Below, one piece after another: positions 4,253-34,655 of a stretch of 64,000 nt of DNA; position 1 is the first letter of the stretch; each line of letters opens with the position of its first letter. Below the pieces are notes generated by a model that saw only the letters and a program-made list of their open reading frames with translations, searched no databases and was not told the DNA's origin. The DNA is taken from the NCBI RefSeq assembly GCF_964194025.1, contig NC_134476.1, forward strand, positions 4,836,001 to 4,900,000. The letters run 5' to 3'. The DNA is from Convolutriloba macropyga (lineage: Eukaryota). Position numbers and translations under genes: made by a program.

Positions 4253-7200
4253 TCAGTATTTGATTTTGACAAGCAGTGCAATGTAAGTTGAAACCATAGC
4301 AGGAACCACTCCGACCCACGGTAAAATCAAACTCCAACCGATTGATGAGTCTGTGTTCTCGGGAACTAGGTCTTTGAGCGCTAATGTCAGACATAAATTA
4401 GCAATAACAAGGAATATGCCTAAAAAAGAAAATTTAATTATCTATTGATTTTTTCTCAAACTTTTAATGGTTAGAAATAACTATGTTGTCTTTTAACATT
4501 GTAACACATTGTAATTCTTATAACTAATCTTCATCTTTATGATAATATTCTTTAATTCATCAGCGTACGCTAGACAAGATTGAATGTTTATCTTGTAAGA
4601 TCTTGCATGATAGTAGTAATACGACGCAGAGGTATACCCCAATACTTCCGCCTTAGTAAACATTGCGCGAATAACAGATACTTGAAATGAAACAAATTAG
4701 GAGACCAGCTTTGTATCTTATTTTTCGCAAAAGGTGTTACGTCACTTTTGCGAATTTAAGACACTTTGAAAATAGTATGCTAGGTGATAGCTGACAATTT
4801 AAAATAGGTGACAAACCTTGTATCACGTTTCCGCTCATTTTCGGTATCTATTTTTTGGATCAAAAAGCATCTCTAATTAAACGCGCGCTTTTTGAGCCTA
4901 ATTAAACGCGCGCTTTTTGTAGCATGCATAAGTGATTTAATACTTTGTAATAAGCCCTTTAATAAAGTTTTTCTTGAGGCTTTTTTTCTTTTAAAGTATA
5001 AAGTTTTTCTTTTAAAGCTTTAAGGTGATTTAAAGACAAATATTAATTACAAACAGCTTTAAATACGAAGTAAATTAAATTTATGTTGAGTGGCAACAAA
5101 TATTATGCTGTACGTCCCAGCGCCACAATAACTGATTTTTTTTTCTGAAAAAATCCTTGCTCAAAAAAAGTTTTGCGCGATGCTAATTTGGGACTGGCCG
5201 AATCTATTTTCACTGGCCGAATCTATTTTGTGGCACATATGGTGTACGTCCCAGCGCCCTTGTATGTGTATGTGGGGATGTGTTTGCTTACACGGATGTT
5301 CGCGTGTACGTGTCTCCATTTGCGTGCGTTTGTTCGCTTTAATTTACCAGTTATCAATTAATAGTTTTAGTAACCACTTTTTCATGCTCAAAATCGCGTA
5401 TTGACTTAGGCCTAATTGCGGATTATAGTGCGAAATCGAGTTATGTTGCGTGCGAAAAAGAGATACATTAATCTAGCACATTCGTGATACATAGCGCGCA
5501 AAAAATAGGTTAAATAGCTTGTATCTCAATTTCGCTGTCAAAATTTGGACAATTTTGCGAAGAAGGTTTGCGCAATTCTCTTCAATTTGGCCTGTTTTTG
5601 CTAAAATAGCTTTTTTTTTCGCAATATTGTTGCATTTTCAATGTATTAACATAGATAAAACGAACAAGAGATACGCAGATTGTGCAGATTTGCCCTTGAC
5701 GTTTTGGGTATACCTCTGCGGCGTAATGAGTGAGAAATTGTTTCCATCAGACAGTCAGACAGTTTTGCCTCATTTTTTCCAGTAAACCTGTGAAAAAATT
5801 TGATTAATTTACTGGGGTGCAAAGCATTTCATTAGCTTTGCAATGTAACCTGACAGGATGACTGTTTACAATTTAACTTTTTTTTCGATAACTATCAAGC
5901 ACGTGTAAGATATTTTGGTTTCCTTTTTTGATTCATTGGTTTCCAAAAGTTTGAATTACATAGATTTTGAGTTTTCAGCTTGTTTTTGATAAAATCTCAA
6001 AGTGTTTCGATTAAAACAACATAATTTCTTTATTTACTACATACTCTACAAGCATGATTTATTTTATATATCATTTCAGGAATTAATGTGTTTTTTCTTA
6101 AATGATGATAATTAGTTATAATAATACCCTGAATCGCAGAGCATGTAATTGAGAGTACAAGAGGTCTGTTTCCTTGAACCGAAGCCAGCATGTACCCCGT
6201 GAAAGCTGCGGCTGCAAATGGACAGAGAGCCATGTAGAAAACTCTCGCTGATTTCATCTTCATCACGAAACTTCGTTCCAGATTGTCAAAATCTAAAGCA
6301 AACAAGACCAATTTTTAGCTTCAATTGTTCATTTCTCGAAAATAGTAAACAGTAACAATTTTTTCCCTATACATGGCTACAAAGTTTTGTTTTTGGCACG
6401 TATTGGAAAAAACAAGCGAAAAAATACAAGCCCAAAGAAATAAAAGTGGAAAATATTTCGGAAAAAAAGATCTGAAAAAAAGATAGGAAAAATTTAGGGA
6501 AGTCTCAGTAAGATCTTTTTCGTCCAAGCTCTGACGATAAGCATTGGGTTATGGTAGTATAAAACCTAATTTCGTGAAAAATATGATCATGCTAGTTTTG
6601 CATGTGCTACCTTTTTGCTACCAATGGTTTCATGCAGTTATTTCAAACTCTGCTCAGTTGTGCAGACGAAAGCATTTTATCCAACTTATAACTGAAGTCT
6701 CAAACAATAATTTGGTATTAATTGTTTTTATCTATTACTGTCTGTAAAAGTAATTCATTGAATCTTTTTTTATTATCTCCTTTTCTAAAAAGAAAAGATA
6801 ACAGATTCAACTAATAGTTTTTTCTTGCCTGACTTTTTTGAGACCTTATCTATATTCGTCGATTTTTACACTTCATGTCGCCTTAAAAAATCTCTATTGT
6901 TAACGACGCTTTTTATTTACACACATTGGCTTTTATTTCAATTTTAAAGGAATGTGTAAATATAAATTTTAATGTGTAAAATGTTAAAGAATATTTTAAA
7001 TGTTAAAGAATATCTTAAATGTTAAAAAAAATTTTAAAGAATTAAATCAGAATAATTTTGCAGTTTGCAATTTTTAAATTGAAAATACTGAAAACTGAAA
7101 ATACTGAAAAAATTGTGAATAAACTAGCATTCTGAAGATGCATTTTAAATCTAGACATTTGTCTTTAATTTGCTAGCTTAGTGACGATAGATGTTTCTCC

Positions 7201-8402
7201 TTTTTCACTACACGAGGTTTTGTTTCGATCCTTTGAAAGTAATTTTAGGCGGTAATTCAAGACGCGACATCATAATAGATGATACTTTAATTGAGTAGGG
7301 AGATACAGCAGTGCAATGATGAGAGCTTAAATACTGTTTTTGCTGATGACAAATAATCTCAGCAGGTTTTCAGCAAAAAAATGTTTTTTTTTTAGATGGG
7401 AACATGATGCAGCAGTGTAAGCTGCACTTTATTAAATGATTTGTAACTTTAAAAAATGGAATTTATCATCAAGTTTTCATGAGAACTCAATATTATTTTG
7501 GCTAATGATACTAGAATTATAGACAAAAAAATAAATGCATTTGAGAGTGGTCAGAAAAAAGCGTCCATTGAGTTCAATTTTTTTTTCACCTTCTATATGA
7601 AAAGTAGACAAACTTCAGTGCAACGTTTTTCTTATTTGACTCTAGGCATTGCAAACAACCGATTGAGTCCAAATATTTTGGTATAAAATTTAATGAATAT
7701 TATAGATTCAAACAGCCAAATCCGTTAGGAGATGAATATTGGCTAAATTTTCTCGACTAGGAGAAAAAAGTTCAAAAGTTTCCGGTAAAAATCAATCAAT
7801 TTTTAAATGTGATTGTACAATTTATGGTGGCGCCACAACAACTGATTGTCCAAACTACAAAATTAAATACTTATTGTATTGTTGGTACAATTTGTTGTGA
7901 AAATATTTTTTTCAGTGCAATTTAAGATATTAAATCTAAAATAGGCATCAAATTTTCAGCTTTGTTTTTATCAGATTTTGCTCGGAAGATTTATTGATTG
8001 CTCTTTGTTTGATTGACAGTTAAAAGAACCTGCCTACAGAAGAAAGCAACCTTCATCATCAAGGCTTTTTCGCATGACAATCACTTAGTTCTCAGCTAAT
8101 GAGACATAATTGTTTGTCAAACGAAGTTTTTCAGTTTTTAAGTTTTTCCGTTTCTAAGTTTTTTACTGGCAGAAAAACATTAAGAATCACTGTTTGATAT
8201 GGTTTGGCATAAAATCAAATTTGAAATTCTGTTTTGACTGTTTCTGCAGTTGTATATCCGTCAAAATCTGAACTGATAAATGGATTGCACAGCCCAGAAT
8301 TTGAGACAGAAAGAATAGATCCGAAAAATGAACACCCGAGCGCCGCATTTCAGCTCATTATTGACAAAACTTCGTTGTTTATTGTACGTTTCATTGAAAG
8401 AC

Positions 8403-8458
<56 letters not shown>

Positions 8459-8827
8459 TAGATAGAAGTGAAGTTTTCATAAGCTATGTTTTTTTAGCTC
8501 AACTTTGTCATGGAAATGTGTTTTTCAGTGACCTTTACTCTGTTAAGTATTTTAGAAAACGTTGACTTTCAGAGACACAAAATCACGATAGCATTGATAA
8601 GCAGGCCTAAATCAGTCTGGATTTTGATGACGTCATATCTTACCATATTTGTAACATTTCTCATTCTCGCAGTATTTCCACAACCCATAGGAGTATTCGA
8701 CAAGGAGAAATGGCTCGCTGATAAAACCAGTGTATCCAGACTTCCCATTAGCCAAAAGTGCCCACAATAAACTGGACAGAACAAGACCCCCTCCTATTGA
8801 AATTAACAATCGACGTTTTTCCATCAT
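4253..8827 (-). CDS. Claudin/PMP22-like gene B, 171 aa; exons 8827-8644, 6292-6128, 4419-4253
   Basis: GT-AG phase-1 introns; 184+165+167=516 nt open frame. TM1, YSYGLWKYC-x4-C loop, TM2, TM3, IGWS before TM4, ends VKIKY-stop. Confidence 0.9.
4621..5724. mobile_element. Non-autonomous TIR DNA transposon in intron 2 of gene B
   Basis: ACGACGCAGAGGTATACCCCAA at 4621 is an inverted match to TTGGGTATACCTCTGCGGCGT ending at 5724. Short TSD readable as AAT or TA. No ORF; internal GTACGTCCCAGCGCC repeats. Mirror copy begins near 63084. Confidence 0.6.
8406..8456. repeat. (TA)n microsatellite
   Basis: Direct TA dinucleotide run in gene B intron 1. Confidence 0.95.
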
Positions 8828-9414
8828 TTTGACGATTTTTGATATTTATTTATGACTAAAATTCTATAGTTAGTTATTTCAAATCGTTTATGACTACAAT
8901 TGCGACTTTAATAACTAAAGTGTACATCAATTTAAAGAGTTATATTTATTTAAACTTTGAAGTGAACTCGCCTGATTAACTTTTGTTGGTTAGTGGTGTT
9001 TGTTGAAGTCAATTTAATGCGTTGGCTCTTTTTAACTTTCCGTAAACTTTTCATAATTAGTTCATTTTGGTTCTGTTATAACTAGTAAAATGTCATGGAA
9101 TCAATGCCCGTTTTGAATTTTACAACTTGTTGGTTGTTAAATAATTGGCAAAATAACAAAGCTTATCGTATTTTGAAATAACTTAGCAGATCAGTGAACT
9201 GTAATTTGATATAAAAACAAATTAATTTTTCGAAGAATTTAAGCAATCGAACAATCAGGTCTATTTCATATCGTTGTTTTCTGTTATTATTCATTATGCG
9301 CCTCTGCGTGATAGTAAAAATTGAGAAATTTAGAAACTAGTACTATGGTCTCAAATACGACAAAAATCATTCACAAAATTAAATTTGGATGTTAATGCTA
9401 TATATAAAACAACA

Positions 9415-9545
9415 TATTCTTGCAAGATCTTGCAAGATTAATATGGTTTGCAAGAACCTCGCAATCGTGCGAGATTAACATCATCTTAAAGCAGACAGCA
9501 ATTTTGCAAGATCTTGTCATATTAACATCCCAATTCGGCCAGGGC
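9415..9545. repeat. Dispersed CTTGCAAG-rich repeat fragment (MITE-like)
   Basis: Iterated palindromic TCTTGCAAGA motifs ending in CGGCCAGGG; related patches near 28960-29045, 31130-31235, 51440-51545, 55900-56000 and 58400-58520. Confidence 0.5.
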
Positions 9546-11354
9546 TGCGATATTAACGATCACTATTTTTCTTACAAAACACGGTACAGATTTTCAATGA
9601 AAGAGAAAGCAAACGTATTCCAGGTAAATAAGAGATTACGAAATAACAGCAATTTATACAAATTTGTTTAAGAAAAAAGACCATTGAGCTCCTTGCACCG
9701 TGACAGTTTTGTACCATGTCAGTTTTGACGTTTGCCCAATGAGTTCAAGAGAAGAACCAAGAATTTGAATATTAAGTATGAACAGACGAAATTCGAGAAT
9801 AGTTATCTCTGAGGCCAGGTGTGAATTTCAGAGGAGCACAGAGCAAATTTTAGTGAATCACCGCAACATTATCACACAAAACTTTATAGTATGATTGAGA
9901 TAATTTAAGAACTTCACAGAAAAAAACTAGGAGTATTGCTGCAATTTTAAGAGTATCGCAGAGATATCTTCTGAATATCACTAAGCATCTTTGAGAGCAT
10001 CACAGAAAAATCTTCACAACAAATTTTAATCAACTCTCGTTGCGATAACAGCAGTATTGTAACTTACTGTTGAAAGAAACATGATAAGCCCCATTTAATA
10101 AAATTTGCTTCATCATCAGGCGACGAGTTTAGCATACTATTTTATCACCACTGTTACTAGTAGTAGTATGTGAGCAGAGCTGGGGGGGGGGGGGGTAAAA
10201 GGACGTACCTATGTATAAAGATTACCTATAGCTTATTTTCATCAATTTTCCAAAGACGTACCTAAAATAGAGAGTGAGAACAATAGAACTGTCATCTTAT
10301 CGTAATTACCCAGGGGTAATTATCTTAATTACCCCAGGGAAATGCATCCGCTCTAATGCACTTCAGCTAATCTTATCTACTTAATAAAATATATCTGCAG
10401 AATTTTTTCTTTCATTCACTTCATTTACGCATAACTTTTTCAATTATCCAAGTTTTAGTTTTTGATTATTAATGAAGTTTTGGTTCGAATAATTTCAATA
10501 TATTGAAAATTTTTCACAAAATCTTCTGTAAAATCTATTTTTGAAAATTTCATTTTTTAACTTTTTTTTACTCCTGATGATATGAAAGTATGCAAGACTT
10601 TTTGGCAGTTTCTTTTCGTAGTTTCTGGTTTATTTCTCAGTAGTTTCAGTTTCGCAAACCCGAAACCATGAACAAATTTTTTCAGATAATGATGTTCAAA
10701 TAATCGATTAAAATTTTTTAACTCAGATTTCGTTGAAAAATACTAAAGCACAGAAAACCATCACTGAAAATTTTTTTGTTTTTTCACAGTTTCAGATTCT
10801 GAAACCTCAAACTAAAAATTTTTTTGGTCGAAAATGTATACTACAGTACAACTTTAGAGGGTATTTTTCGAAGTGGAATTCAATGGCGGTAATTTCACGG
10901 TCAATTGTAGATTATGGGTTTGGGTTTTATGTAGTTTTAGTTTCTCAAACATCAAACTACAAAAAATTTTCTTCGAGAATGGTAACTTATATCATCACTC
11001 TATATGTTGTTTTTAAACAATGCATTTGATAGTGATTTATTTGACCCTAAGAAGTTACAATTTTTGGGTTTTTGCGAAGTTTCAGCTTCTGAAACCTGAA
11101 ACCTCGAACTATTTTTTTTGGAATTTTGTGTTACAGTACATCTTTATAGCGTAATTTCTAACGCAGAATTTAATGGATACAATTTAAAAGTCGTAAAAAG
11201 AGGACAAGTTTTCATTTTTCGAAGTTTTGGATTCTGCAACCTGAAACCTGAATTTTTTTTTGGATTTGTGTGTTACAGTACATCTTTATATTGTAATTTT
11301 TCAGGCCGAATGCAGAGGGCATAATTTATAAGTCATTGCTAAAGTAAAAGTTCT

Positions 11355-11870
11355 TGGAAAAAATACCCAATTATTGCCAAAAATTACCCAATTATTGCCG
11401 AAAAAACCCAAATATTGGCAAAAAAATCCCAAATTCTTGAAAAAAAACAAACACTCAACCAATGTGAAAAATTCCCAACTATTGCCAACAGAGCCCAGGT
11501 CTTGGTGAAAAACACCCAATTCTTGACCCAAAATATCCAATTATTGTCAAAAAACTCAAATGTTACCAAAAAATATCAAACTGTTGTAAAAAAAAACAAT
11601 TCTAGCCCAAGATTATCTGTTTCTAGTAATGAATTACACAATTCATAGCAAAAATACACATTTATTACCACAATCTACTAAACTTTTGCCAAATATACCT
11701 AATTCCTGCGACAAGGAACGCAGTTCTAGTAAAAATATCCCAATACTTGCCACACCGAGACACAAGTGTCGCCAAAAATACCCATTTTTACCACAAAATA
11801 GCAAAATCTTGTCAAAAAATACCCAAATTGTAACCAAAATAACAAAATTGTATCAAATATTTATCTAAAA
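11355..11870. repeat. Degenerate ~21-bp minisatellite in left arm of element
   Basis: Iterated AAAAATACCCAATTATTGCCA-like units; mirrored at ~21620-22135. Confidence 0.75.
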
Positions 11871-12088
11871 TATATCAAAAATTAGACAATCTTGCCATCA
11901 TCCGTTTTTCTCTAATTTCTTATCAACAATCCAAGTATTTAGTGACCTTAAAACATCAACTTTTGAGATCATCTTTTGTAAAGACGAATCTTCTCAGGTG
12001 ATCGATATAGGTTTAATGAGTACAAATTTGTCACGAATTTATTGCTATTGTACAGAATTAATCGTTAAAAGTTCAGTCATAGTAATTT

Positions 12089-12376
12089 AACAATTACGTA
12101 CTACTATCTTCTCAATTAAGAACAATTACGTGATCATTTTGTGTAAGAGGGCCACTCACCTCTTTGGAACAAAATTTACTCCAGCTACGTCATATGATTG
12201 CTTCAATTAGGGATACCTATGTATTGTATGGGGTCACTGAACTCATGTGAACATAAAATAATCCTTACTACTTACGATATTATTCCTATTTTATCAAAGC
12301 ATGCACAGCTCACGTGCTTGAAGTCTTACTCATAGTATTGTAACAATTACGTCACTATTGCGTCATAATGATGTCA
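12089..12376 (+). promoter_or_regulatory. Putative promoter with clustered ATF/CRE-like sites and an E-box
   Basis: AACAATTACGT three times (12089, 12121, 12342), TACGTCA 12186, CACGTG 12311 and TGCGTCA 12359, directly upstream of the cargo gene; mirrored in the right arm. Confidence 0.35.
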
Positions 12377-12552
12377 TTTTTTTATTGTAGTGCACAAACA
12401 AAAATTCAACTCATTGCGCTTATTTTCGTTCTGTTCAACAACTTAGCTATAATTAGACTTTTTCATTTTTTTCGGAGACAAGTTTAATCTCCTTTTCCTA
12501 CAAACCTAAGTTTTCAGTTATAAACCTTTCAGTGGAGATTCTTCATCTCTAG

Positions 12553-13661
12553 GACATCTTCCTATTTCCCATTCCAGGTAAGTCACCTCTGTCATAGAAT
12601 ACGAAAACAGACCAAAAAAGAATAATAAGGGGCTATTATAATCATCGTACTCATTCGCAAATAGCATATTATTTTTTCAGAGAGAAAGTTTTTTTCAATA
12701 TCTGTATTTTCAATTTATTTAGGACTTCAACCGTCGTCACCTAAAAAAGGCTGGAATAATGAATATCAAATCTGTGAAATTGAACGAAAATCTTAAGGCC
12801 CACTTCTTCTTCCCCGATTTCAATGATGATGTAGCAATTATAAAGGAGAGGAAGACGTGCTTCGGCTGGGTAGCTGAACCTCCATTCTGCATTCCGAGGC
12901 AGCTTCTGGTCTTCATTATTGCAATCGAGAATTTGCCAGAAGTTTCTGTTCCATACCAACAGAAAACTGTAGACTTCTACGAGAACCACATCGAAAACAA
13001 AACTTTACAAGTCTCAGACAACATGGAACTGAGAAGATCAGTTATTGCACAATTTTGTGATTATGAGTTGTTCTATAGACCAATGTATGAAAATCAATTA
13101 GGATTTTATGAGGAGGAGAGGGAACTTAAATTTCTCTGGTGTGTGTCTGACGAGTATGACCATTTGCAGGAGCAGAAACCTGATCGGGATTGTGACGAGT
13201 GGGAAAATGGGTCATTGACAGGGAGTATTATCGCAATTATAGAAGAAGAGAACGCACTTGATCCCAAGTTAGACAACAAAAAATCTGACCAGGCAGTCCC
13301 TTTTGCGTAATTTTCTACAGACACTGGACAAGATGCAATGAAAGAAGTACAGGGAGCATCGAGTGTTGAAAATACTTCAATCAAGTCTGCCAGAACCATC
13401 CTTAGTACTGTACTCAATGATTATACAGATTACCAAGATCATATTTTATCTAATGAAGCAAGTGAAAAAATATCTGAAAAAACTTCCCTTAAATCTGAGC
13501 AACCAGCATCTTGTACACAAACGACTGTCAAGAGAAGGGCTCCTGCTGTCAATAACCCTGAAAGAGTGGGAAGTAAAAATTTAGATGGTGATGAAAACAA
13601 AGACAACTTGTGTCCTCCATCGTGCAAATTGAGACAAGCTGCTGAGTTGTATAGTACCTAA
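12553..13661 (+). pseudogene. Spliced cargo gene of unknown function (~300+ codons, one in-frame TAA)
   Basis: ORFs 12759-13310 and 13338-13661 are in the same frame, separated by one TAA. The frame is open back to a TTTAG acceptor at 12722. A 25-nt exon 12553-12577 (AG...CAG/GTAAGT) splices in frame. Confidence 0.6.
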
Positions 13662-16008
13662 ACTAACAGGCTGAGAAGTAATTTTTTTGACTGATTATCT
13701 GTTTGTATTTCCGGTATAATTTCAGATCCAAAAACTATTATTTCCTGAGGTGACTAATTGACTGTTTAATTTGTAATATCTCTTTTTTACACTCAGAAAA
13801 AGCTGAATTTCATGTATGCTTTTGAATTGATACTTTGATAAAATAATTTATTTGAGTTTTACAAATGCAATTTTCGAAATTAACTTTTATTTCAAGTTCA
13901 TATTTGAATTAAAATTTATGTCAAAAAATGCCTGTTTTTGTAATATCTGTTTTTTTCTCAAAAATGGCGGTTAACGACAAAAAAGGCTTGTTTTCATAAA
14001 ATTTTTTTTCAAAAACGCGGGTTTTTTGGCTTCTGCAATGAACTCCCGGCAGCTGATACTGGATGACGCAAAACGATTACAGTGATAATTTCGAAGCAAA
14101 CTCCAGCAGCAATTCTTCCCATCAGAATATTGCAATAAGCGTGCTGCCTTTGATAATAGATTACCTGGTCATTTAAAAGAAGAATTTTTGGCAGGAATTT
14201 TTAGAAACAGATACTCATACAAATCTTTAGGTATAGAATTTACCATTTTTAAAAAAAAGTTGAAAACCTTTTGCATAATTTTTTAATGTTTAGAAAAAAT
14301 ATTCTTTTACTATCCCATTTTTTTCAAAGAAGTCGTTTTTTTACAAAAGGTTTCTTTTTTCATTTTTCCATTTGTCAGTTTTTGAAGTTTTTTAATGTGA
14401 AGTTTTGAATTGAATCATTGTTTTAAATGAAAATCTTTCTTACTAAAATGATTTTCTTTGAAAATTGTTGTGTTTTACACACTGTTTTTAACAAAAATAT
14501 AAATCTTGATGTTTTTTTAATTTTTTATTTCTCCTTTTTTTTCTGTTTTTTTTAATGTAAAAATTTAATTTTAATTAATTTTTTTTTTGAAAAAACAAAA
14601 TTTTACTAGAATAATCTTTCTTTCAAAAATGCCTTTTTTTCATAAGGTTTTAAACAAAAAATGCAAATTGTGTTGTTTTTTATTGTTTTATTTTTCCTTT
14701 TTTTCTGTTTTTGAATTTTTTAACGTAAAATTTTAAGTTTTTTTTTCGAAAGAATTTGTTTTTACTAAAAAAAATTTCTGTCAAAAATGCCGTTTTTTAC
14801 ATAAGGTTTTTAACAAAAAATGCAATTTGTGTTGTTTTTTATTTTTCTATTTTTCCTTTTTTCTGTTTTTGAATTTTTTTTATGTAAAATTTTAAATTTT
14901 TTTTTCGAAAAATCTTGTTTTACTAAAAAAAATTTCTGTCAAAAATGCCGTTTTTTACATAAGGTTTTTAACAAAAAATGCAACTTGTGTTGTTTTTTAT
15001 TTTTCTATTTTTCTTTTTTTCTGTTTTTGAATTTTTTAATGTAAAATATGAAATTTAATTAATTTCTTTTTGAAAAAACAAATTTTACTAGAATAATTTT
15101 TTTTTCAAAAATGCCGTTTTTTACATAAGGTTTTAAACAAAAAATGCAACTTGTGTTGTTTTTTTATTTTTCTATTTTTCATTTTTTTCTGCTTTCGAAT
15201 TTTTTTATGTAGAATTTAATTCTTTTTTGAACAAACAAGTTTTACTAGAATAATTTATCTTTCAAAAATGCCGTTTTTTACATAAAGTTTTTACCAAAAA
15301 AAGCTATTTTTGTTTTTTAATTTTCTATTTTTTAGTTTTTGAATTTTCTTATTGAATTACTTTTTTTTCTTAAAAATGTTGTTTTCTTAAATATTTTTTG
15401 GCAAAAATGCCGTTTTTTACATTATGTATTTAACAAAAAATGTGAATTTTGTTGTTTTTAACTTTTCTGTTTTTCCTTTTTTCAGTTTTGGAAGTTTTTT
15501 TTGTAAAATTTTTAATTTAATTTTTTTTTGAAAAAACATTGTTTTAGTAAAACAATTTTTTTCCAAATGTCGTTTTTTGCATAATATTTTCAACAAAAAA
15601 TGTAAGTTTGATGTTTTTTTCTTTTTCGATTTTTTAATTTTTCAGCTCTTGATGTTTTTTTGCAATTTCTTTAGCAAAGCAGAAAATTGTAAAAATCAAT
15701 GTATTACAATTATTACAAAAATCAATTATTTATTACAATTATTTATTACAAATTAATACATTTATTAATAAAATTTGCGGAAATCTATAACAAATCAAGC
15801 TTTTGATGACAAGCATATTTGTTTGAATTTTATCATTTTAAACAATTACATTTTTATTGATATCATGTTCTTCTTGAGAAATTCCGATTTATTCATCGTC
15901 TCGTGATAAAAATACTTCAGAGTAAACCCTGGGGTACCGGTGTCGCGTGGTGACAATTACTGGCTTCAAGCATCCCTAGCGTGCATCTCTGGATGTTGTT
16001 CGGAAATT

Positions 16009-16065
16009 AAAGATCGTTGGGCGCGCAGAACGCGCCTCGCGGCAGAGCCGCGATCAACGATCTTT
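16009..16065. other. GC-rich Y-shaped (three-way) hairpin, copy 1
   Basis: Stem AAAGATCGTTG/CAACGATCTTT with ears GGCGCG-CAGAA-CGCGCC and TCGCGGC-AGA-GCCGCGA. Confidence 0.8.
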
Positions 16066-17587
16066 TAAAAACTGAAAAACTGAAAAATGTCTTCCAAAAC
16101 TGAAAAAAGGAAAAACAGAAAAGTAAAAAACAACAAAATTCACATTTTTTGTAAATTACATAATGTAAAAAACGGCATTTTTTGCCAAAAAATGTTTTAG
16201 AAAACAACATAATAAAAAAAATAATTCAATAAAAAATTCAAAAACTGAAAAATAGAAAAATAAAAAACAACACAAGTTGCATTTTTTGTTTAAAAGCTTA
16301 TGTAAAAAACGGCATTTTTGAAAAAAAAAACATTCTAGTAAAACTTGTTTTTTCAAAAAGGAAATTAATTAAATTTCCTATTTTCCATTAAAAAATTCAA
16401 AAACAGAAAAAAGGAAAAATAGAAAAATAAAAAACAACACAAGTTGCCTTTTTTGTTAAAAACCTTATGTAAAAAACAGCATTTTTGACAGAAATTTTTT
16501 TTAGTAAAACAAAATTTTTTAAAAAAAAAATTTAAAATTTTACATAAAGGTTTTAAACAAAAAATGCAACTTGTGTTGTTCTTCATTTTTTATTCTTCCT
16601 TTTTTTTCTGTTTTTGAATTTTTTCATGTAAAAGTTTAAAATTTTTTACTCAAAAAATTTTGTTTTACTAAAAAAAATTTCTTTCAAAAATGCCGTTTTT
16701 TACATAAGGTTTTAAACAAAAAATGCAACTTGTGTTGTTTTTTTATTTTTCTATTTTTCATTTTTTTCTGCTTTCGAATTTTTTTATGTAAAATTTAATT
16801 CTTTTTTGAACAAACAAGTTTTACTAGAATAATTTATCTTTCAAAAATGCCGTTTTTTACATAAAGTTTTTACCAAAAAATGCTATTTTTGCTTTTTAAT
16901 TTTCTATTTTTCAGTTTTTGAATTTTTTATTGAATTACTTTTTTTTTCTTAAAAAATGTTGTTTCCTTAAACATTTTTTGGCAAAAATGCCGTTTTTTAC
17001 ATTATGTATTTAACAAAAAATGCGAATTTTGTTGTTTTTAACTTTTCTGTTTTTCCTTTTTTCAGTTTTGGAAGTTTTTTTGTAAAATTTTTAATGTAAT
17101 TTTTTTTTGAAAAAAGATTGTTTTAGTAAAACAATTTTTTTCCAAATGTCGTTTTTTGCATAATATTTTACACAAAAAATGTAAGTTTGATGTTTTTTCT
17201 TTTTCGATTTTTTAATTTTTCAGCTCTTGATGTTTTTTGCAATTTCTTTAGCAAAGCAGAAAACTGTAAAAATCAATGTATTACAATTATTACAAAAATC
17301 AATTATTTATTACAATTATTTATTACAAATTAATACATTTATTAATAAAATTTGCGGAAATCTATAACAAATCAAGCTTTTGATGACAAGCATATTTGTT
17401 TTAATTTTATCATTTTAAACAATTACATTTTTATTCATATCATGTTCTTCTTGAGAAATTCCGATTTATTCATCGTCTCGTGATAAACATACTTCAGAGT
17501 AAACCCTGGGGTACCGGTGTCGCGTGGTGACAATTACTGGCTTCAAGCATCCCTAGCGTGCATCTCTGGATGTTGTTCGGAAATTAT

Positions 17588-17640
17588 AGATCGTTGGGCG
17601 CGCAGAACGCGCCTCGCGGCAGAGCCGCGATCAACGATCT
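17588..17640. other. GC-rich Y-shaped hairpin, copy 2
   Basis: Same ears; stem AGATCGTTG/CAACGATCT; direct repeat of copy 1 at an offset of 1577 bp. Confidence 0.8.
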
Positions 17641-19849
17641 CTTAAAAACTGAAAAACTGAAAAAAGTCTTCCAAAACTGAAAAAAGGAAAAACAGAAAAG
17701 TAAAAAACAACAAAATTCACATTTTTTATAAATTACATAATGTAAAAAACGGCATTTTTTGCCAAAAAATGTTTTAGAAAACAACATAATAAAAAAATAA
17801 TTCAATAAAAAATTCAAAAACTGAAAAATAGAAAAATAAAAAACAACACAAGTTGCACTTTTTGTTATAAACCTTATGTAAAAAACGGCATTTTTGACAG
17901 AATTTTTTTTAGTAAAACAAAAATTTTCGAAAAAAAAATTTAAAGTTTTACATAAAAAAATTCAAAAACAGAAAAAAGGAAAAATAGAAAAATAAAAAAC
18001 AACACAAGTTGCTTTTTTTGTTAAAAACCTTATGTAAAGAACGGCATTTTTGAAATAAATTTTTTTTATTAAAACAAAATTTTTCCAATAAAAATTTTTA
18101 GAATTTTACATGAAAAAAATCAAAAACAGAAAAAAAAGGAAAAATAAAAAATGAAGAACAACACAAGTTGCATTTTTTGTTTAAAACCTTATGTAAAAAA
18201 CGGCATTTTTGAAAAAAAAAATTATTCTAGTAAAACTTGTTTTTTCAAAAAGGAAATTAATTAAATTTCCTATTTTCCATTAAAAAATTCAAAAACAGAA
18301 AAAAGGAAAAATAGAAAAATAAAAAACAACACAAGTTGCTTTTTTTGTTTAAAACCTTATGTAAAGAACGGCATTTCTGAAATAAATTTTTTTACTAAAA
18401 CAAAATTTTTCGAATAAAAAATTTTAGAATTTTACATGAAAAAAATCAAAAACAGAAAAAAAAGGAAAAATAAAAAATGAAGAACGACACAAGTTGCATT
18501 TTTTGTTTAAAACCTTATGTAAAAAACGGCATTTTTGAAAAAAAAATTATTCTAGTAAAACTTGTTTTTTCAAAAAGGAAATTGATTAAATTTCCTATTT
18601 TCCATTAAAAAATTCAAAAACAGAAAAAAGGAAAAATAGAAAAATAAAAAAAAACACAAGTTGCCTTTTTTGTAAAAACCTTATGTAAAAAACAGCATTT
18701 TTGACAGAAATTTTTTTTAGTAAAACAAAATTTTTCGAAAAAAAATTTAAAATTTTACATAAAAAAATTCAAAAACAGAGAAAAAGGAAAAAAACAACAC
18801 AATTTGCATTTTTTGTTAAAAGCCTTATGAAAAAAATGCATTTTTGAAAGAAAAATTATTCTAGTAAAATTTTGTTTTTTCAAAAAAAATTAATTAAAAT
18901 TAAATTTTCACATAAAAAAATTAAAAAACAGAAAAAAGGAGAAATAAAAAATAAAAACCATCAAGATTTATATTTTTGTTAAAAACAGTGTGTAAAACAC
19001 AACAATTTTCAAAAAAAAAATCATTTTAGTAAAAAAGATTTTCATTTAAAAAAATGATTCAATTCAAAAATTCATATTAAAAAACTTCAAAAACTGACAA
19101 ATGGAAAAATGAAAAAAGAAACCTTTTGTAAAAAAACGACTTCTTTGAAAAAAATGGGATAGTAAATTATACAGTAAATTATACAGCAAAAATGGGATAG
19201 TAAATTATATAGTCAAAACAGTAAAAAATTATGCAAAAGGTTTTCAACTTTTTTTTTTTAAAAAATTGTAAAATCTATACTTAAAGATTTGTATGAGTAT
19301 CTGTTTCTAAAAATTCCTGCCAAAAATTCTTCTTTTAAATGACCAGGTAATCTATTATCAAAGGCAGCACGCTTATTGCAATATTCTGATGGGAAGAATT
19401 GCTGCTGGAGTTTGCTTCGAAATTATCACTGTAATCGTTTTGCGTCATCCAGTATCAGCTGCCGGGAGTTCATTGCAGAAGCCAAAAAACCCGCGTTTTT
19501 GAAAAAAAATTTTATGAAAACAAGCCTTTTTTGTCGTTAACCGCCATTTTTGAGAAAAAAACAGATATTACAAAAACAGGCATTTTTTGACATAAATTTT
19601 AATTCAAATATGAACTTGAAATAAAAGTTAATTTCGAAAATTGCATTTGTAAAACTCAAATAAATTATTTTATCAAAGTATCAATTCAAAAGCATACATG
19701 AAATTCAGCTTTTTCTGAGTGTAAAAAAGAGATATTACAAATTAAACAGTCAATTAGTCACCTCAGGAAATAATAGTTTTTGGATCTGAAATTATACCGG
19801 AAATACAAACAGATAATCAGTCAAAAAAATTACTTCTCAGCCTGTTAGT

Positions 19850-20935
19850 TTAGGTACTATACAACTCAGCAGCTTGTCTCAATTTGCACGATGGAGGACA
19901 CAAGTTGTCTTTGTTTTCATCACCATCTAAATTTTTACTTCCCACTCTTTCAGGGTTATTGACAGCAGGAGCCCTTCTCTTGACAGTCGTTTGTGTACAA
20001 GATGCTGGTTGCTCAGATTTAAGGAAAGTTTTTTCAGATATTTTTTCACTTGCTTCATTAGATAAAATATGATCTTGGTAATCTGTATAATCATTGAGTA
20101 CAGTACTAAGGATGGTTCTGGCAGACTTGATTGAAGTATTTTCAACACTCGATGCTCCCTGTACTTCTTTCATTGCATCTTGTCCAGTGTCTGTAGAAAA
20201 TTACGCAAAAGGGACTGCCTGGTCAGATTTTTTGTTGTCTAACTTGGGATCAAGTGCGTTCTCTTCTTCTATAATTGCGATAATACTCCCTGTCAATGAC
20301 CCATTTTCCCACTCGTCACAATCCCGATCAGGTTTCTGCTCCTGCAAATGGTCATACTCGTCAGACACACACCAGAGAAATTTAAGTTACCTCTCCTCCT
20401 CATAAAATCCTAATTGATTTTCATACATTGGTCTATAGGGCAACTCATAATCACAAAATTGTGCACGTTCCATGTTGTCTGAGACTTGTAAAGTTTTGTT
20501 TTCGATGTAGTTCTCGTAGAAGTCTACAGTTGTCTGTTTGTATGGAAGAGAAACTTCTGGCAAATTCTCAATTGCAATAATGAAGAACAGAAGCTGCCTC
20601 GGAATGGAGAATGGAGGTTCAGCTACCCAGCCGAAGCACGTCTTCCTCTCCTTTATAATTGCTACATCATCATTGAAATCGGGGAAGAAGAAGTGGGCCT
20701 TAAGACTTTCGTTCAATTTCACAGATTTGATATTCAGCTTTTTTTAGGTGACGACGGTTGAACTCCTAAACAAATTGAAAATACAGATATTGAAAAAAAC
20801 TTTCTCTCTGAAGAAATAATATGCTATTTGCGAATGAGTACGATGATTATAATAGCCCATTATTTTTCTTTTTTGGTCTGTTTTCGTATTCTATAACAGA
20901 GTTGACTTACCTGGAATGGGAAATAGGAAGATGTC
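19850..20935 (-). pseudogene. Mirror copy of cargo gene, further disabled
   Basis: Shares the GCG-TAA stop; adds an 8-nt deletion removing the ATG, a 15-nt in-frame deletion (MELRRSVIAQ to MERAQ) and GAA>TAA at 20387-20389. Confidence 0.65.
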
Positions 20936-23900
20936 CTAGAGATGAAGAATCTCCACTGAAAGGTTTATAACTGAAAATTTAGGTTTGTAGGAAAAGGAGA
21001 TTAAACTTGTCTCCGAAAAAAAATGAAAAAGTCTAATTATAGCTAAGTTGTTGAACAGAACGAAAATAAGCGCAATGAGTTGAATTTTTGTTTGTGCACT
21101 ACAATAAAAAAACGACATCATTATGACGCAATAGTGACGTAATTGTTACAATACTATGAGTAAGACTTCAAGCACGTGAGCTGTGCATGCTTTGATAAAA
21201 TAGGAATAATATCGTAAGTAGTAAGGATTATTTTATGTTCACATGAGTTCAGTGACCCCATACAATACATAGGTATCCCTAATTGAAGCAATCATATGAC
21301 GTAGCTGGAGTAAATTTTGTACCAAAGAGGTCAGTGGCCCTCTTACACAAAATGATCACGTAATTGTTATTAATTGAGAAGATAGTAGGACGTAATTGTT
21401 AAATTACTATGATTGAACTTTTAACGATTAATTCTGTACAATAGCAATAAATTCGTGACAAATTTGTACTCATTAAACCTATATCGATCACCTGAGAAGA
21501 TTCGTCTTTACAAAAGATGATCTCAAAAATTGATGTTTTAAGGTCACTAAATACTTGGATTGTTGATAAGAAATTAGAGAAAAACGGATGATGGCAAGAT
21601 TGTCTAATTTTTGATATATTTTAGATAAATATTTGATAAAATTTTGTTATTTTGGTTACAATTTGGGTATTTTTTGACAAGATTTTGCTATTTTGTGGTA
21701 AAAATGGGTATTTTTGGCGACACTTGTGTCTCGGTGTGGCAAGTATTGGGATATTTTTACTAGAACTGCGTTCCTTGTCGCAGGAATTAGGTATTTTTGG
21801 CAAAAGTTTAGTATATTGTGGTAATAAATGTGTATTTTTGCTATGAATTGTGTAATTCATGACTAGAAACAGATAATCTTGGGCTAGAATTGTTTTTTTT
21901 TACAACAGTTTGATATTTTTTGGTAACATTTGAGTTTTTTGACAATAATTGGATATTTTGGGTCAAGAATTGGGTGTCTTTCACCAAGACCTGGGCTCTG
22001 TTGGCAATAGTTGGGAATTTTTCACATTGGTTGAGTGTTTGTTTTTCAAGAATTTGGGATTTTTTTGCCAATATTTGGGTTTTTTTCGGCAATAATTGGG
22101 TAATTTTTGGCAATAATTGGGTATTTTTTCCAAGAACTTTTACTTTAGCAATGACTTATAAATTATGCCCTCTGCATTCTGCCTGAAAAATTACAATATA
22201 AAGATGTACTGTAACACAAAATTCCAAAAAAAATAGTTCGAGGTTTCAGGTTTCAGAAGCTGAAACTTCGCAAAAACCCAAAAATTGTAACTTCCTAGGG
22301 TCAAATAAATCACTATCAAATGCATTGTTTAAAAACAACATATAGAGTGATGATATAAGTTACCATTCTCGAAGAAAATTTTTTGTAGTTTGATGTTTGA
22401 GAAACTAAAACTACATAAAACCCAAACCCATAATCTACAATTGACCGTGAAATTACCGCCATTGAATTCCACTTCGAAAAATACCCTCTAAAGTTGTACT
22501 GTAGTATACATTTTCGACCAAAAAAATTTTTAGTTTGAGGTTTCAGAATCTGAAACTGTGAAAAAACAAAAAAATTTTCAGTGATGGTTTTCTGTGCTTT
22601 AGTATTTTTCAACGAAATCTGAGTTAAAAAATTTTAATCGATTATTTGAACATCATTATCTGAAAAAATTTGTTCATGGTTTCGGGTTTGCGAAACTGAA
22701 ACTACTGAGAAATAAACCAGAAACTACGAAAAGAAACTGCCAAAAAGTCTTGCATACTTTCACATCATCAGGAGTAAAAAAAAGTTAAAAAATGAAATTT
22801 TCAAAAATAGATTTTACAGAAGATTTTGTGAAAAATTTTCAATATATTGAAATTATTCGAACCAAAACTTCATTAATAATCAAAAACTAAAACTTGGATA
22901 ATTGAAAAAGTTATGCGTAAATGAAGTGAATGAAAGAAAAAATTCTGCAGATATATTTTATTAAGTAGATAAGATTAGCTGAAGTGCATTAGAGCGGATG
23001 CATTTCCCTGGGGTAATTAAGATAATTACCCCTGGGTAATTACGATAAGATGACAGGTCTATTGTTCTCACTCTCTTTTTTAGGTACGTCTTTGGAAAAT
23101 TGATGAAAATAGGCTATAGGTAATCTTTATACATAGGTACGTCCTTTTACCCCCCCCCCCCCCCAGCTCTGCTCACCTACTACTACTGTTACTATATAAA
23201 CGGTGGTAATGAAAGAGTGCGGCAAACTCGACAACAGTGTGACTATCTTCAAATCATCTGCCTCTGTGGTAGTCTTAATAGTCTTAATTTACTATGTGGT
23301 ATAAGTTATGCAGCTTTTATGAAAGCAACAAGATTTGATTTAAAACATTAAACGGAGTGGTTTAAACAATATGGCTTTCTATTGGAGTTTGATAACTTTT
23401 GGGTGGCAATAATAATAACTTTGCTGCAGCTAATATTGTCACAAAAGAGTTTCACAGAGCAAACGTCATTATGAATAAATGTCCAAAGGATGAATTGAAT
23501 TGAAGGGATTACAAAAAAAGATAAATTTCTTTCCGCATATTCAACCATTATCTTCTTCAACCACATAAACGCAACGCCAAATAGAGTCCAAGAAAAAATT
23601 GTTTTGTTGTATTAATTGAGCAGTCTTTTAAACAACTTCGATAACAGCAAACCAATGAATGTAAAACTTTTATAACTTTTATTCAGGCAAATCTTAACGG
23701 AAAAGCAATAATCTGCAAACAAGACCCAACTCATCTGTGATTTGTCTACAAAAATTGAAGTCTGAAACACTATTTTGATTTCATCCTTGATTTATTATAC
23801 TTGACTCAGTATAAGTCAGGTTTTTATAGTTGAATGGTTTTCGTTACAAAATGTTTCAGATTTTCATCTACGTTCTGCTTTGTTTTAGCTCTGTCTAGTG

Positions 23901-24617: not shown

Positions 24618-27600
24618 TCACAGCTTTATCTTTATGAACAGGGCTAGAAGAGCACCAGCTAATGCAGGTACAATTCCGATCCAGGGTATGATGCTGCTAT
24701 AGCCCACAGATCCAACATAATTAATTTCATTATAGGCCAAACTCTGGCACATATTGGCCAATATCAGTAGCACAGCTGAAAATAGAACAAAAGAACCAAA
24801 ATGTTTCATTCACGACAGTTGCCATTGTTTTCTAAGCAACTATTACCTCAAAAATTACAGTTTCAACCGTTTCTTCTTCATTAGAAATGAAATTGGTAAA
24901 CTGGAAAGTGACTAAATGGTTAAGAAGTCCACACCTTTTGTTTTTTAAATAAAAAATCTGTTGAGATCCAAATTTCTCTTAAGAAAATCCATTTAACAGA
25001 TTCACTTGGCTCCACTGAATGAAACTGGGGATCTGTCATCATAGAGATTATTTTTAATGACAAAAAGAAGAAAAATTCTATGTTCATTCATTTTTTCGAA
25101 GTCAAACGGTTTTCAAGTTGTTGAAAGCATAACTACTGAATGCAAACAACATAAAAGTCCATTGATGGCTACCTCGTAAGCTCAACAGTCTTTTCATTGA
25201 TAATAGCTAGTGATAACACCACAAAAAGAACAGAAAGAGGCAAAAACGAAAACAGGCATATGGAAACCACAAAAATAAGTTATTATCTGTCTAAAATACT
25301 TTTAATCAAATGTGCTTTGTTAGGAATCCCAGTGGTACCTTTCATTAATAATGTTTAATGATGAGAAAAAATTAGAGCAAGATTCACAAAAGAATTTTGG
25401 AAACAGAGTGTCAACGCCATAAAACTGTTAACTATTGACTAAACGAGCAATAAAAAATCATTTAAGGTTTCTTGGAAAGCCTAAATTTTAACTTCTTATT
25501 ATCAGTTTTTTATCATAATGCCGTTCTTTGATAATGAGCAAAAACTATTAGGCAAAAATGAACGCCACAGGAAACAAAAAGATATCAAAAACAAAACCTC
25601 ACTTGCTGAAATGCAGTGATTTTAACATTATGCCAACTAATCGTATTACGTTGAATACGTTAGTGATAAATTGACAAAAGTAACAACAAGGCAGGTAAAC
25701 AGCGACAAATGAAGGTACAATTTATCACTAAACTTTTTAATGTTAGAAAAACAAAAGTATCTTGTTTGATAATTGACTTATTAAACCATTTAATACACTT
25801 TCTCTTTTGAAATAAAATGATAAGACAGCAAATTCTTACAATAAGTTCGTTTAAAGCTAAAAAATAGCAAAAATCATATGAAATCATTTTGAATCAAAAC
25901 TATAAAAGTTTTCCCGTGTTCAATTACAAAAACCAGTAGATCACATGCAGCAGCTTGAAAAGCAATTGTAGAAAATCACGGGAAAATTGTTGGAAAGAGC
26001 AACTAATATGCCGCAAGTGAAAAAAAATTATCCGTGAAACCCCAAAGATTGATCAAACAACAGTTTCTCTCTATATTTTCAAAGCATTTTGCGATTCGCG
26101 ATTTGATTTGAAATTCTAGGATGTTATCCGCCATTCTGCAGCTCAGTGGGAATATAACTTTGGCGCCAACTCAGGAGCATGTGTTTTATTACATAGTAAG
26201 GTGCAATCAAACAACACATATTTTTCAAGAAGGACAAAAAAATTTTGGGGCGCCAAAACAGAGTGGATTTATGTTTTTTGCTTTGAAAATAGTCATTTTT
26301 TGTCCTGTTTAATGTTGTTGCCGTACCAAAATCACTGCTCCAATTTGATTTCTCACTGATGTTAGAGACTCACTAAAAATATGAAGGTCTGAAAAAATGT
26401 CCTACCGTTGTAATCTAGGTCCATTTAATTGTAAAAACCACAATGAAACTAACAAAAACCTCGCTATAGGATTGAATTGTTATCAACAATACGAAAAATC
26501 CCAATTTTGAAAATAATATAGCAAAAATGTCTTATTTTTATTAAATGTGAACAAAAATTTACAATATTCTCTTAAATATAAAACTTTTTACCTGGATAAC
26601 TCCTCATAAATTAAAATTAAAAATGATTTCAATTTATAATTCGGCTCTCGATGCGGTTCGAAAGAAATGATACCACTCATATCTTTCTACGTCAATTATA
26701 TTCTTCGTACAAAATTGACTGAAAAAAAACCAGTCCAACATATAGTTCCAGCTGTCACGAAGTGATGTTGGAATAACAAATGCTGTAATATTCGTTTGAT
26801 GTGGACACTTTTGCACGTCCTCCTTGAAGCTCTGGTCATCCAAAAATGTCTTTTCAGTGGCTGGAGGAGTTAATGGTTACATCTTGACGAATTGGGATAC
26901 GTTTTAATGGGAAAGAATTTTCCACTTCATGTGTTGAAAATTAGAAAAAAATGTCAATTTAATCTTAACTCATAATAATTGAACCTCAGTTGTTTAACTA
27001 AAAATATCCATACTAACATCAAAGCAAAAGATTATTTGAAAAAAAAATAAATTGTTTGTCAAAATTGAAATGCTCGTGAAAATCTCCGCTTACCATTAGC
27101 TGACGCAATGAGAGCGCCTATGACCGAGAAAAAGTCTCCAATGAAGACCGAAGCCAGAAGGGCACAGCATGCCGCTGCTCCAGTGAGATACTCCACTACG
27201 TAAAATGTCCTTGCAAACATTATTCTTGTCTTGAAAGCACTGCTGCCATGAAAGACTGAAAAAGTACCCCATTTTTAACTATCATTTTATTATCTTTTTT
27301 TCGATCAACAAATATTCCAAATATCTGAATATCTGGTATCTTTATCACAACTATCATTATTACAATTTNNNNNNNNNNNNNNNNNNNNNNNNNNNNNNNN
27401 NNNNNNNNNNNNNNNNNNNNNNNNNNNNNNNNNNNNNNNNNNNNNNNNNNNNNNNNNNNNNNNNNNNNNNNNNNNNNNNNNNNNNNNNNNNNNNNNNNNN
27501 NNNNNNNNNNNNNNNNNNNNNNNNNNNNNNNNNNNNNNNNNNNNNNNNNNNNNNNNNNNNNNNNNNNNNNNNNNNNNNNNNNNNNNNNNNNNNNNNNNNN

Positions 27601-29340
27601 NNNNNNNNNNNNNNNNNNNNNNNNNNNNNNNNNNNNNNNNATTCTTATTGTTATTATTAATATTTTTTTTATTATTTTTTTAAAGATTGTTGTTATTATT
27701 ACTAATTTTATCATTATTATAAGTACTTTTTAACTATTACCACGATTATAATTAATGTTATTATTTTCAATAATCTTCTTTTTACGTTGATTGGTGTTAC
27801 TTCAATGTAATTTGTTTTTTTTTGTATTTGTCAATCTCACTATTACAATTGTGACTAAGGTAACATTGGAATTAATAAAAATGCTTCACAATTGGCCTCT
27901 GATCACAATTTTTCCAGTTGTGAAGTCAAAAGTCCCCTAAGGGTAATGGAATTTATCTCCTTGATACTGACGCTTCGCAATTGTCAGTTTAGTTTTAAGG
28001 TTATTTTTAACAACACCAATTTTGATAAAACCAATTTTAGTTTTTCTGAATTGAGGAAAAGTAGAATTTTCATTTTTTTAAAATCTTATTATTTTATTTC
28101 TTCGTCATTTTTGAGGAAGAACATTGTGTATGTTGATCCTAGATGTTTTCGCTCAAGATCATTGTTAGATCTGAATAGTTTGAGCGGTGAAAGATAGCTG
28201 AAGAAAAAGTTTGTGGAGATTTTTATCTGCGCAAATTGATTGAAAGTACAGCCATGCACATATTTTAACATAATTATACTCTTATTGTTATGTCTTCTCT
28301 AACTCCAAAATTCATGTGGTGATTGCTTTAACAATCGTTTTCCGCACATCAAAAGACAACAAAGAAATGAGATTTTTCGTTTATTGCGCTTCCTTACAGT
28401 CAATCCTGTTGCGTATTTCTCTCTATCAGTCTCTGAAATGATATTCCACAGCAGGTCTTTTTTTGAAGAATTGAGGGAGGACATACCTGATCTGTTGTTG
28501 ATGCAAAAAACTTTTTTTGTAAAAGTGCGCATTGTTTTTAAATGCATCATAACTGCGTTATCTCTCATCATCTTACAAATTGATTTCAGGAATAGGGTTT
28601 GATTAAATTGGGAGTTAGAATTTGAAACATTTTGCAAAGGTAATGGTGACTCTGATTGCTAGCGGCAGCAGCTACGAAAGTAAAAAATACGCATTCAAAT
28701 TTTCACCAATTAAGAAATCAAATTCGGTAGTCACACTTTTGCACTTCATATGCTATGGTAAAAGCAATAATGGAAAAGTCAAATTTTCCATACAATAATC
28801 TCAGTCGTTTATTTTTGCTTCAAATTCAGAGTTACTAGTAATTTGCGAATATTCAGTTTTTATTTATTTTTAACACTAAAATTTAATTTTTTTAAAAATT
28901 TTTATACAATTTAGTTCAAATTTTCTGAAATAACAGAGTCTCTTAGTCGAGACAGGATGTCAATCTTGCAAGATCTTAAAAGTTTATGCATAATCTTGCA
29001 AGCGCTTGCAAGATTCTTGCAATATTAAGATCGTGAATCGTCTAGGAAAGTTTAACTGACGTGCAGATAACGGAAACTATATGCACTTTAAGAACCGGGA
29101 GGGGTTGATTTTTGATTGTCATAAATTTGTACCATATTTGACGCATGTTCCATCAGCGCATGCCTTCCACACGCCAAACGAAGCTTCATGCGTGATATCT
29201 TGTATCGTAAATGGGCCCACATTTCTTTCTTCACCAGGAACCGTTACATGATATCCATCGTTACCACAAGCCAACAAGCCACAAAGAATACTACTTCCAA
29301 CCAGTCCAACAGCCACAAAGACCAGAATTTTTTTATCCAT
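24618..29340 (-). CDS. Claudin/PMP22-like gene C, 175 aa; exons 29340-29133, 27255-27094, 24775-24618
   Basis: 208+162+158=528 nt open frame with GT-AG phase-1 introns; SFGVWKAC-x4-C loop, VGYS before TM4, ends IKIKL-stop. Intron 1 spans an N gap. Confidence 0.85.
27369..27640. other. Assembly gap (272 N) inside ATT-rich low-complexity tract
   Basis: N run flanked by degenerate (ATT)n sequence. Confidence 0.98.

Positions 29341-34600: not shown

Positions 34601-34605
<5 letters not shown>

Positions 34606-34652: not shown

Positions 34653-34655
<3 letters not shown>

Follow-up and report, generated by a model that had tools for sequence, protein, structure and literature searches.

A multi-copy family of palindromic foldback elements with Maverick-type ends in an acoel, Convolutriloba macropyga

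Introduction

In vertebrates, Mavericks (Polintons) most commonly bear the end motif 5'-(AGT)2//(ACT)2-3' and have perfectly matching target-site duplications, 6 bp long, on either side, and the reiteration of their ends is reported to assist jumping-back when replication is protein-primed (PMC8097293). Ends of an (AG)3 type also count among the reiterated Maverick motifs. A duplication of 6 bp is characteristic of Polintons among integrase-type DNA transposons (PMC10045372). Mavericks usually occur at low copy number (PMC8097293) and appear to be absent from the anole (PMC3014272), and non-autonomous derivatives of them are scarcely documented. Here we analyze a 64,000-nucleotide stretch of the genome of the acoel Convolutriloba macropyga (RefSeq assembly GCF_964194025.1, contig NC_134476.1, positions 4,836,001–4,900,000; hereafter the window), in which positions 10159–23187 hold a foldback element of 13,029 bp. 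This element consists mostly of two inverted arms, carries Maverick-type ends and belongs to a family that we estimate at about a hundred copies. An earlier sequence-based reading of the same stretch, referred to below as the original prediction, had proposed that it is one Polinton end copied back on itself, a defective-interfering or satellite parasite of an active Polinton.

Two other kinds of element enter the comparison. Several superfamilies have each evolved foldback structure on their own, by losing the transposase and lengthening the terminal inverted repeats (TIRs), and Mutator-like foldback elements are flanked by 8–10-bp duplications (PMC4079207). Among elements with integrase-type transposases, IS3EU/GingerRoot generate 6-bp duplications and end in TA..TA or occasionally TG..CA (PMC10045372), and the ends of Ginger2 read TGTNR (PMC2836005); for Ginger2/TDD, one of these two papers (PMC2836005 and PMC10045372) describes 6-bp AT-rich targets and the other 4–5-bp duplications. 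We found no report of palindromic Maverick derivatives in the literature searched. Judging from its ends and target sites, we propose that the C. macropyga family is a non-autonomous foldback family with Maverick-type ends that is moved in trans by Maverick-type machinery, a reading to which we assign a probability of roughly 60%.

An inserted element belonging to a family

With very little doubt, the element in the window is a genuine inserted member of a multi-copy foldback family with 6-bp duplications and AGTAGT ends. End sequences, self-alignment and a second assembly all place it at 10159–23187, with no strand assigned. The left target-site duplication, GTTACT at 10153–10158, is identical to the six bases directly outside the right end (23188–23193), and the sequence at these positions bears out the bounds, the AGT-type termini and the flanking GTTACT that the original prediction had described. 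The termini read AGTAGT...ACTACT. At the left, the end consists of AGTAGTAGTATGTGAGCAGAGCTGG followed by a run of 14 G residues; at the right, the reverse complement is AGTAGTAGTAGGTGAGCAGAGCTGG followed by 15 G residues, a difference of one base and one additional G.

Contig ctg26081 of ENA assembly ERZ25071359, produced by a second assembler, matches 20.3 kb of the window; across this length, which takes in the entire element with its two junctions, there are 0 mismatches and 2 gap positions. An artefact of reads or assembly (a chimeric fold-back read), which the original prediction had named as a way in which it might fail, and a host-made local inverted duplication are contradicted by this agreement and by other features. 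The two arms differ by 1–3%, the center of the palindrome is asymmetric, and copies at other loci have 6-bp duplications of their own. We therefore consider either kind of spurious or local origin extremely improbable, even though the element lies within a larger inverted duplication that surrounds a 200-N gap and may itself be a scaffolding artefact (see below). In the other arm of that larger duplication, the 13-kb element has no counterpart: the interval corresponding to 9979–23855 is only ~430 bp long (57527–57955), and the element is therefore an insertion relative to homologous sequence. At 62–70% identity, the surrounding DNA is too diverged for the empty site to be located precisely, and what holds is the coarse absence of 13 kb.

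No second member of the family was found within the 64-kb window. We compared the DNA around ten relatives and recovered three further complete copies, matching the prediction that other palindromic copies with different 6-bp duplications should exist. These are the L005 copy (7348–19633, 12.3 kb, arm identity 96.4%, duplication GAGATT), the L006 copy (5448–20618, 15.2 kb, arm identity 95–96%, duplication CGCGTA) and the ctg21344 copy (3755–21219, 17.5 kb, arm identity about 90%, duplication AATAAG), the last of which was obtained by rejoining the overlapping loci L007 and L009 into their own public contig sequence. Together with the window copy (10159–23187, 13.0 kb, GTTACT), they bring the complete copies to four; all have the palindromic plan and each has a different duplication. 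Subfamilies are 83–95% alike, and identity between the ctg21344 copy and that in the window is only about 83%. At L001 and L004, one arm is seen, followed by more than 7–8 kb of satellite, with L001 sharing only 10159–10406 with the window copy and diverging beyond it. A rearranged copy is found at L008 and a truncated one at L002; L011, on an NCBI contig (GCA_964194025.3), carries one end of another copy.

The palindromic plan is thus the norm for this family, whose members have inserted at unrelated sites with 6-bp duplications. Because the two-armed plan is common to copies with different duplications, it was as a palindromic molecule that the element integrated, and on this point the original prediction, which had inferred integration of an already palindromic molecule, holds.

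Ends, target sites and the probable mode of integration

Alignment of 12 family ends delimits a conserved terminal domain of ~260 bp, located at 10159–10420 (+ strand) at the left end of the window copy and, in mirror image, at 22926–23187 (− strand) at the right. Over the first ~260 alignment columns, the commonest base reaches a frequency of 0.8–0.96 per 20-column bin, poly-G length variation excepted, and all 12 of the ends examined start with AGTAGT. The left domain contains the AGTAGT end motif (three AGT units), ~17 bp and a poly-G run at 10182–10195, matched by poly-C at 23150–23164 in the right domain; it also holds TAAAAGGACGTACCTATGTAT and a second GACGTACCTA, as well as a short palindrome at ~10305–10337. 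A subterminal 10-mer, GAYGTACCTA, occurs twice per end, and the four occurrences in the window all fall within the ends of the element, as compared with 0.04 expected.

An exact 6-bp duplication would arise by chance with a probability of 1/4096 per copy and is present at all four complete copies. The flanks of the window copy can also be read as an 8- or 10-bp duplication, an alternative that the original prediction had left room for, but this reading is possible in that copy alone and fails in the other three.

These properties closely resemble those of Mavericks. The family has (AGT)2...(ACT)2 termini at 12 of 12 ends, exact 6-bp duplications at unrelated sites in four of four complete copies, and terminal inverted repeats; moreover, its complete copies measure 12.3–17.5 kb, as compared with a reported Maverick size of 12.7–24.6 kb. 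The Polinton-type terminus and 6-bp signature recognized in the original prediction thus match the published descriptions (PMC8097293, PMC10045372). Given both the ends and the 6-bp duplication, the enzyme that integrates these elements in trans is most likely a Maverick-type (retroviral-like) integrase. The reiterated AGT ends could, in addition, serve protein-primed replication by a Maverick's polymerase.

Several observations weigh against assigning the family to Maverick-type machinery. First, in the 15 open reading frames (ORFs) of 70 codons or more that were searched against Pfam from the element, there was no remnant of a pPolB, integrase, ATPase, protease or capsid gene, the genes called inside other copies have no Pfam family on record, and the sole rve match is a Ty1/copia gene outside the L004 copy. 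Lacking these Maverick genes, the family does not qualify as an autonomous element. Second, its dimensions are unusual: almost the whole element is palindromic, the arms extend over 4–6 kb and more, compared with 46–1447 bp for reported Maverick TIRs, L004 runs for ~13.5 kb from its end to the central segment U described below, and some copies probably exceed any Maverick in size. Third, a copy number of about a hundred is high for Mavericks, satellite arrays set the family further apart from them, and long tandem-repeat TIRs typify foldback elements moved by cut-and-paste transposases. Fourth, the host is an acoel, and the Maverick end motif was described for vertebrates, not acoels (PMC8097293); no report of Mavericks in acoels was found in the literature searched. 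Finally, no autonomous Maverick with this terminus was found; the terminus pattern gave 0 matches in IMG/VR and the JGI metagenomes, a search that did not cover the host assembly. A capsid-like limit on size was also considered as a feature of the family and rejected; the L001 and L004 copies are probably 25 kb or more.

Much of this would be expected if the family were a classical foldback transposon. It would then be mobilized by a DDE transposase of the cut-and-paste type, from a different and perhaps undescribed superfamily that leaves 6-bp duplications by coincidence, and the AGTAGT ends would be coincidental as well. Like Drosophila FB, Galileo and Tetris, the C. macropyga family is non-autonomous, with very long tandem-repeat TIRs of varying repeat number, a variable middle, no transposase, kilobase-long satellite arrays derived from TIR repeats and many rearranged copies, and foldback structure is known to arise independently across superfamilies (PMC4079207). 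The GAYGTACCTA motif and the 21-bp repeats of the arms resemble arrays of transposase-binding sites, and the high copy number would also suit such an origin. Against this origin, the P/Galileo duplication is 7 bp long and that of Mutator-like foldback families 8–10 bp, rather than the 6 bp found here. Known superfamilies with 6-bp duplications end in TA..TA (IS3EU/GingerRoot) or TGTNR (Ginger2), whereas the exact (AGT)2/(ACT)2 motif, present at 12 of 12 ends here, agrees with that published for Mavericks. The family further differs from FB, Galileo and Tetris in having a 300-codon ORF in each arm and arms that are several-fold longer. On balance, a DDE-type foldback origin seems to us possible but rather unlikely.

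Two groups of integrase-type elements were tried as closer relatives and rejected. IS3EU/GingerRoot resemble the family in their 6-bp duplications and would bring integrase-type transposases, but their ends are TA..TA as opposed to AG..CT. For Ginger2/TDD, whose transposases are also of the integrase type, the TGTNR ends are unmatched, and the targets GTTACT, GAGATT, CGCGTA and AATAAG do not fit RTATAY.

Architecture of the arms and center

By gapped self-alignment, 10159–11169 matches 23187–22176 at 98.8% identity and 11215–14322 matches 22276–19188 at 97.2%; inward of these segments, opposed satellite arrays at 14306–15642 and 19166–17816 are 84% identical. Each arm thus extends over ~5.5 kb, and the two account for ~84% of the 13,029 bp, in keeping with the predicted share of more than 80%. 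Excluding satellite, the left arm occupies 10159–14322 (+), with 97.2–98.8% identity to the reverse complement of the right arm at 19188–23187 (−). From the end inward, each arm contains the ~260-bp terminal domain, ~140-bp and 21-bp repeats, a 300-codon orphan ORF (ORF300) and an array of ~160-bp satellite units, and the two arms join at U, a short segment in the center. The subterminal ~140-bp repeats, with GTTTCAG...CTGAAAC cores, lie at 10600–11340 (+) and are mirrored in the right arm; Tandem Repeats Finder (TRF) reports a period of 142 at 11070–11334. Blocks of 20–21-bp tandem repeats, also detected by TRF, follow at 11351–11857 (+). Their repeat number differs among copies, with ~1.3 kb of such repeats in L001 (7223–8523).

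The center was resolved by TRF and a map of monomer orientations. A satellite array of ~160-bp units at 14440–15634 (+; TRF period 158, 7.6 copies) leads into a unique segment, U, whose first copy spans 471 bp at 15630–16100 (+) and was delimited by sequence comparison. U is AT-rich, with a G+C-rich tail that contains a short inverted repeat. Next come an inner satellite array at 16092–16548 (−), assigned from the orientation map, and a second array at 16538–17220 (+) that is part of a 1.6-kb tandem duplication. A second copy of U at 17208–17677 (+), 98.3% identical to the first, and a satellite array at 17660–19166 (−), which mirrors 14306–15642 and is seen in self-alignment as well as in the TRF and orientation data, complete the center. 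The center is therefore asymmetric: a block comprising forward satellite, U and reverse satellite is present in tandem (14953–16548 versus 16538–18115, 93.6% identity), and U occurs twice in the same orientation because this block has been duplicated. U likewise follows forward satellite in L004, L005, L006, L008 and L011.

The window copy has ~1.3 kb of satellite per arm, far less than the 6–9-kb arrays of some other copies, and no satellite array was seen in the window outside the element. Arrays of 6–9 kb occur in L001 (11200–19106), L004 (11500–20758) and L008 (11300–17013), with up to 44 monomer hits. In view of these long arrays, the element may act as a seed of satellite DNA.

Common origin of the two arms within a copy

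Across the ~3-kb segment that bears the ORF, the arms within a copy are 97.7–99.4% identical, as compared with 88–95% between copies. Informative sites in quartets of arms all unite the two arms of one copy (105/0/0, 264/0/0 and 270/0/0), with zero sites uniting arms across copies. The two arms of a copy thus have a more recent common origin than do different copies. Passive inheritance of independently evolving arms predicts left/right differences that are shared among copies, and none were seen; the arms have therefore been either re-copied, by fold-back synthesis, or homogenized by gene conversion within each lineage. In a plausible sequence of events, the displaced single strand of a palindrome would fold into a hairpin, restoring a duplex end, and one arm could then be copied from the other, either by fold-back synthesis or by gene conversion within the element, leaving the arms nearly identical.

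In several copies U itself is present in mirror image, turning close to its positions 143/174 (L005), 352/397 (L006) and 389/438 (L008); in the window copy it is unmirrored. We considered these turn points as proof of recurrent snap-back and rejected them as such, as asymmetric central deletions in an older palindrome would give the same picture.

The same ambiguity bears on the explanation put forward in the original prediction, in which one end of a Polinton snapped back a single time, producing a unique defective genome that then integrated. The ends and duplication of the window copy would fit this scenario, and centers that turn at different points in U are what independent fold-backs would generate, although central deletions account for them equally well. 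The palindrome, however, is a property of the family: a two-armed plan with ORF300 and satellites is found in all complete copies, across subfamilies 83–89% alike, and the arms contain no recognizable Polinton sequence or gene remnant. A one-off fold-back of a Polinton end is accordingly very improbable. Snap-back defective genomes of linear viruses with strand-displacement replication offer a tentative parallel. In both cases, one end occurs together with its neighboring sequence in two inverted copies, and the halves of a molecule are near-identical, as would follow from copying one half off the other. The palindromes studied here differ in being integrated, heritable and spread as a family, with arms that have no recognizable parental genes.

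ORF300, a lineage-specific reading frame

The original prediction reported no long ORF. In its literal sense this stands, the longest ORF in the element being 183 codons, but a decayed copy of a 300-codon ORF in each arm had been missed. Both copies point inward. The left one (12759–13661, +), recognized by comparison with intact relatives, has one premature stop and no frameshift; the right one (19850–20740, −), whose outer bound at 20740 was set from arm symmetry, is interrupted by two premature stops and also has an in-frame indel, again with no frameshift. In other copies (P0001, P0005, P0012 and P0022), ORF300 is intact and encodes 300 amino acids. A search with the longest ORF piece as query recovered relatives in 102 protein clusters with 371 member sequences, all in ENA assembly ERZ25071359 and many of them intact at 300 residues.

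The 15 ORFs scanned from the element (70 codons or longer) have no match in Pfam, nor do the full-length ORF300 relatives, and a sequence search of the PDB with ORF300 gave chance matches only. An AlphaFold model based on a 20-sequence alignment has a mean predicted local distance difference test (pLDDT) score of 33 and is unusable. An ORF300 profile compared with 1.84 billion representative sequences retrieved only fragments of its own family, the long matches (P0163, P0178 and P0188) having unrelated domains or none. The ratio of nonsynonymous to synonymous substitution (dN/dS) is 0.4–0.8 among four copies that had been picked as intact, a weak and biased basis for assigning function. ORF300 is thus a lineage-specific orphan of doubtful function. 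Because it is weakly constrained, has no confident fold and is broken in the window copy, it is probably dispensable for movement.

One member of the cluster formed by the C-terminal part of ORF300 is an annotated host protein, XP_075265660.1 (P0210), from the C. macropyga RefSeq set, which has 451 amino acids and a gene of 23 kb with introns. It consists of ~285 residues of an unrelated, secreted-looking protein followed by the last ~165 residues of ORF300, the 3' part of which serves as the last exon (L011 6522–29539, CAXMKX030004020.1, GCA_964194025.3). This arrangement suggests either exonization of the element or a false gene model. The protein and the copy end at L011 identify the host of the other copies as probably C. 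macropyga, or else a very close relative.

Possible life cycle and implications

The Maverick-type reading can be extended to a more specific and decidedly tentative proposal, which we think doubtful as a whole: that these elements, in line with the original prediction, are satellite-like parasites of Mavericks, gene-less palindromic linear DNAs that retain only Maverick ends and depend on a helper's protein-primed polymerase and integrase. In such a cycle, displaced strands would snap into hairpins and a single arm would be the source from which every new molecule is regenerated, with the satellite arrays perhaps acting as stuffer. Rebuilding from a single arm would explain both the strict identity of arms within a copy and the varying turn points in U. 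If the proposal were correct, a foldback-type, high-copy and non-autonomous derivative of Mavericks/Polintons would be described here for the first time, and the family would be evidence of present or past Maverick activity in acoels.

More broadly, a family with Maverick-type ends that numbers about a hundred copies would demonstrate that large-scale hijacking of the Maverick integration machinery is possible, and would add a superfamily to the lineages in which foldback architecture evolved independently. It would also connect ends of the Maverick type with the origin and expansion of a ~160-bp satellite. The strict identity of 3-kb arms within copies offers a testable signature of the maintenance or regeneration of long palindromes, whichever of these operates, and large palindromic repeats of this kind are a hazard in assembling and scaffolding this acoel genome.

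The surrounding inverted duplication and other observations

As a whole, the window is a larger inverted duplication with arms at 4848–39023 and 39901–64000, the second of which runs off its right end. Within it, 4848–9300 pairs with 64000–58706 and 30090–39023 with 52595–39901, at 86–97% identity, and its center is the 200-N gap at 39701–39900. Contig ctg26081 stops at about window position 39419 and has a coverage tag of 16x, compared with 39–62x for other contigs. The contig names of this ENA assembly resemble those given by a HiFi metagenome assembler, which would suit an animal with symbionts. The large duplication may be a genuine palindrome of some age, or it may consist of two diverged haplotigs scaffolded tail to tail. 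Its right arm includes a 3.5-kb stretch (44359–47908) that is missing from the left, where the corresponding position lies between 34553 and 34604; this stretch adjoins a (TA)n microsatellite and has no long ORF, terminal inverted repeats or AGTAGT ends.

The window has a G+C content of 31% and, being AT-rich with very few long ORFs, is as expected for an intron-rich animal genome; a search of all of it against Rfam gave 0 matches. A run of 272 Ns occupies 27369–27640. At L004 1–344, outside the family copy, lies a Ty1/copia-type polyprotein gene (gag, zf-CCHC and rve), and integrase-bearing retroelements are thus present in the host genome. Long G/C runs, several of them followed by TAA(A), are found in further repeats of the genome and occur in the window at 38570–38586, 38967–38977, 39941–39959, 40333–40342 and 52739–52748, as well as at L011 5707, 6271 and 22990 and at L006 4220. 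Similar runs adjoin the ends of the family studied here, and those elsewhere may be markers of the termini of further repeat families, or else a property of this genome.

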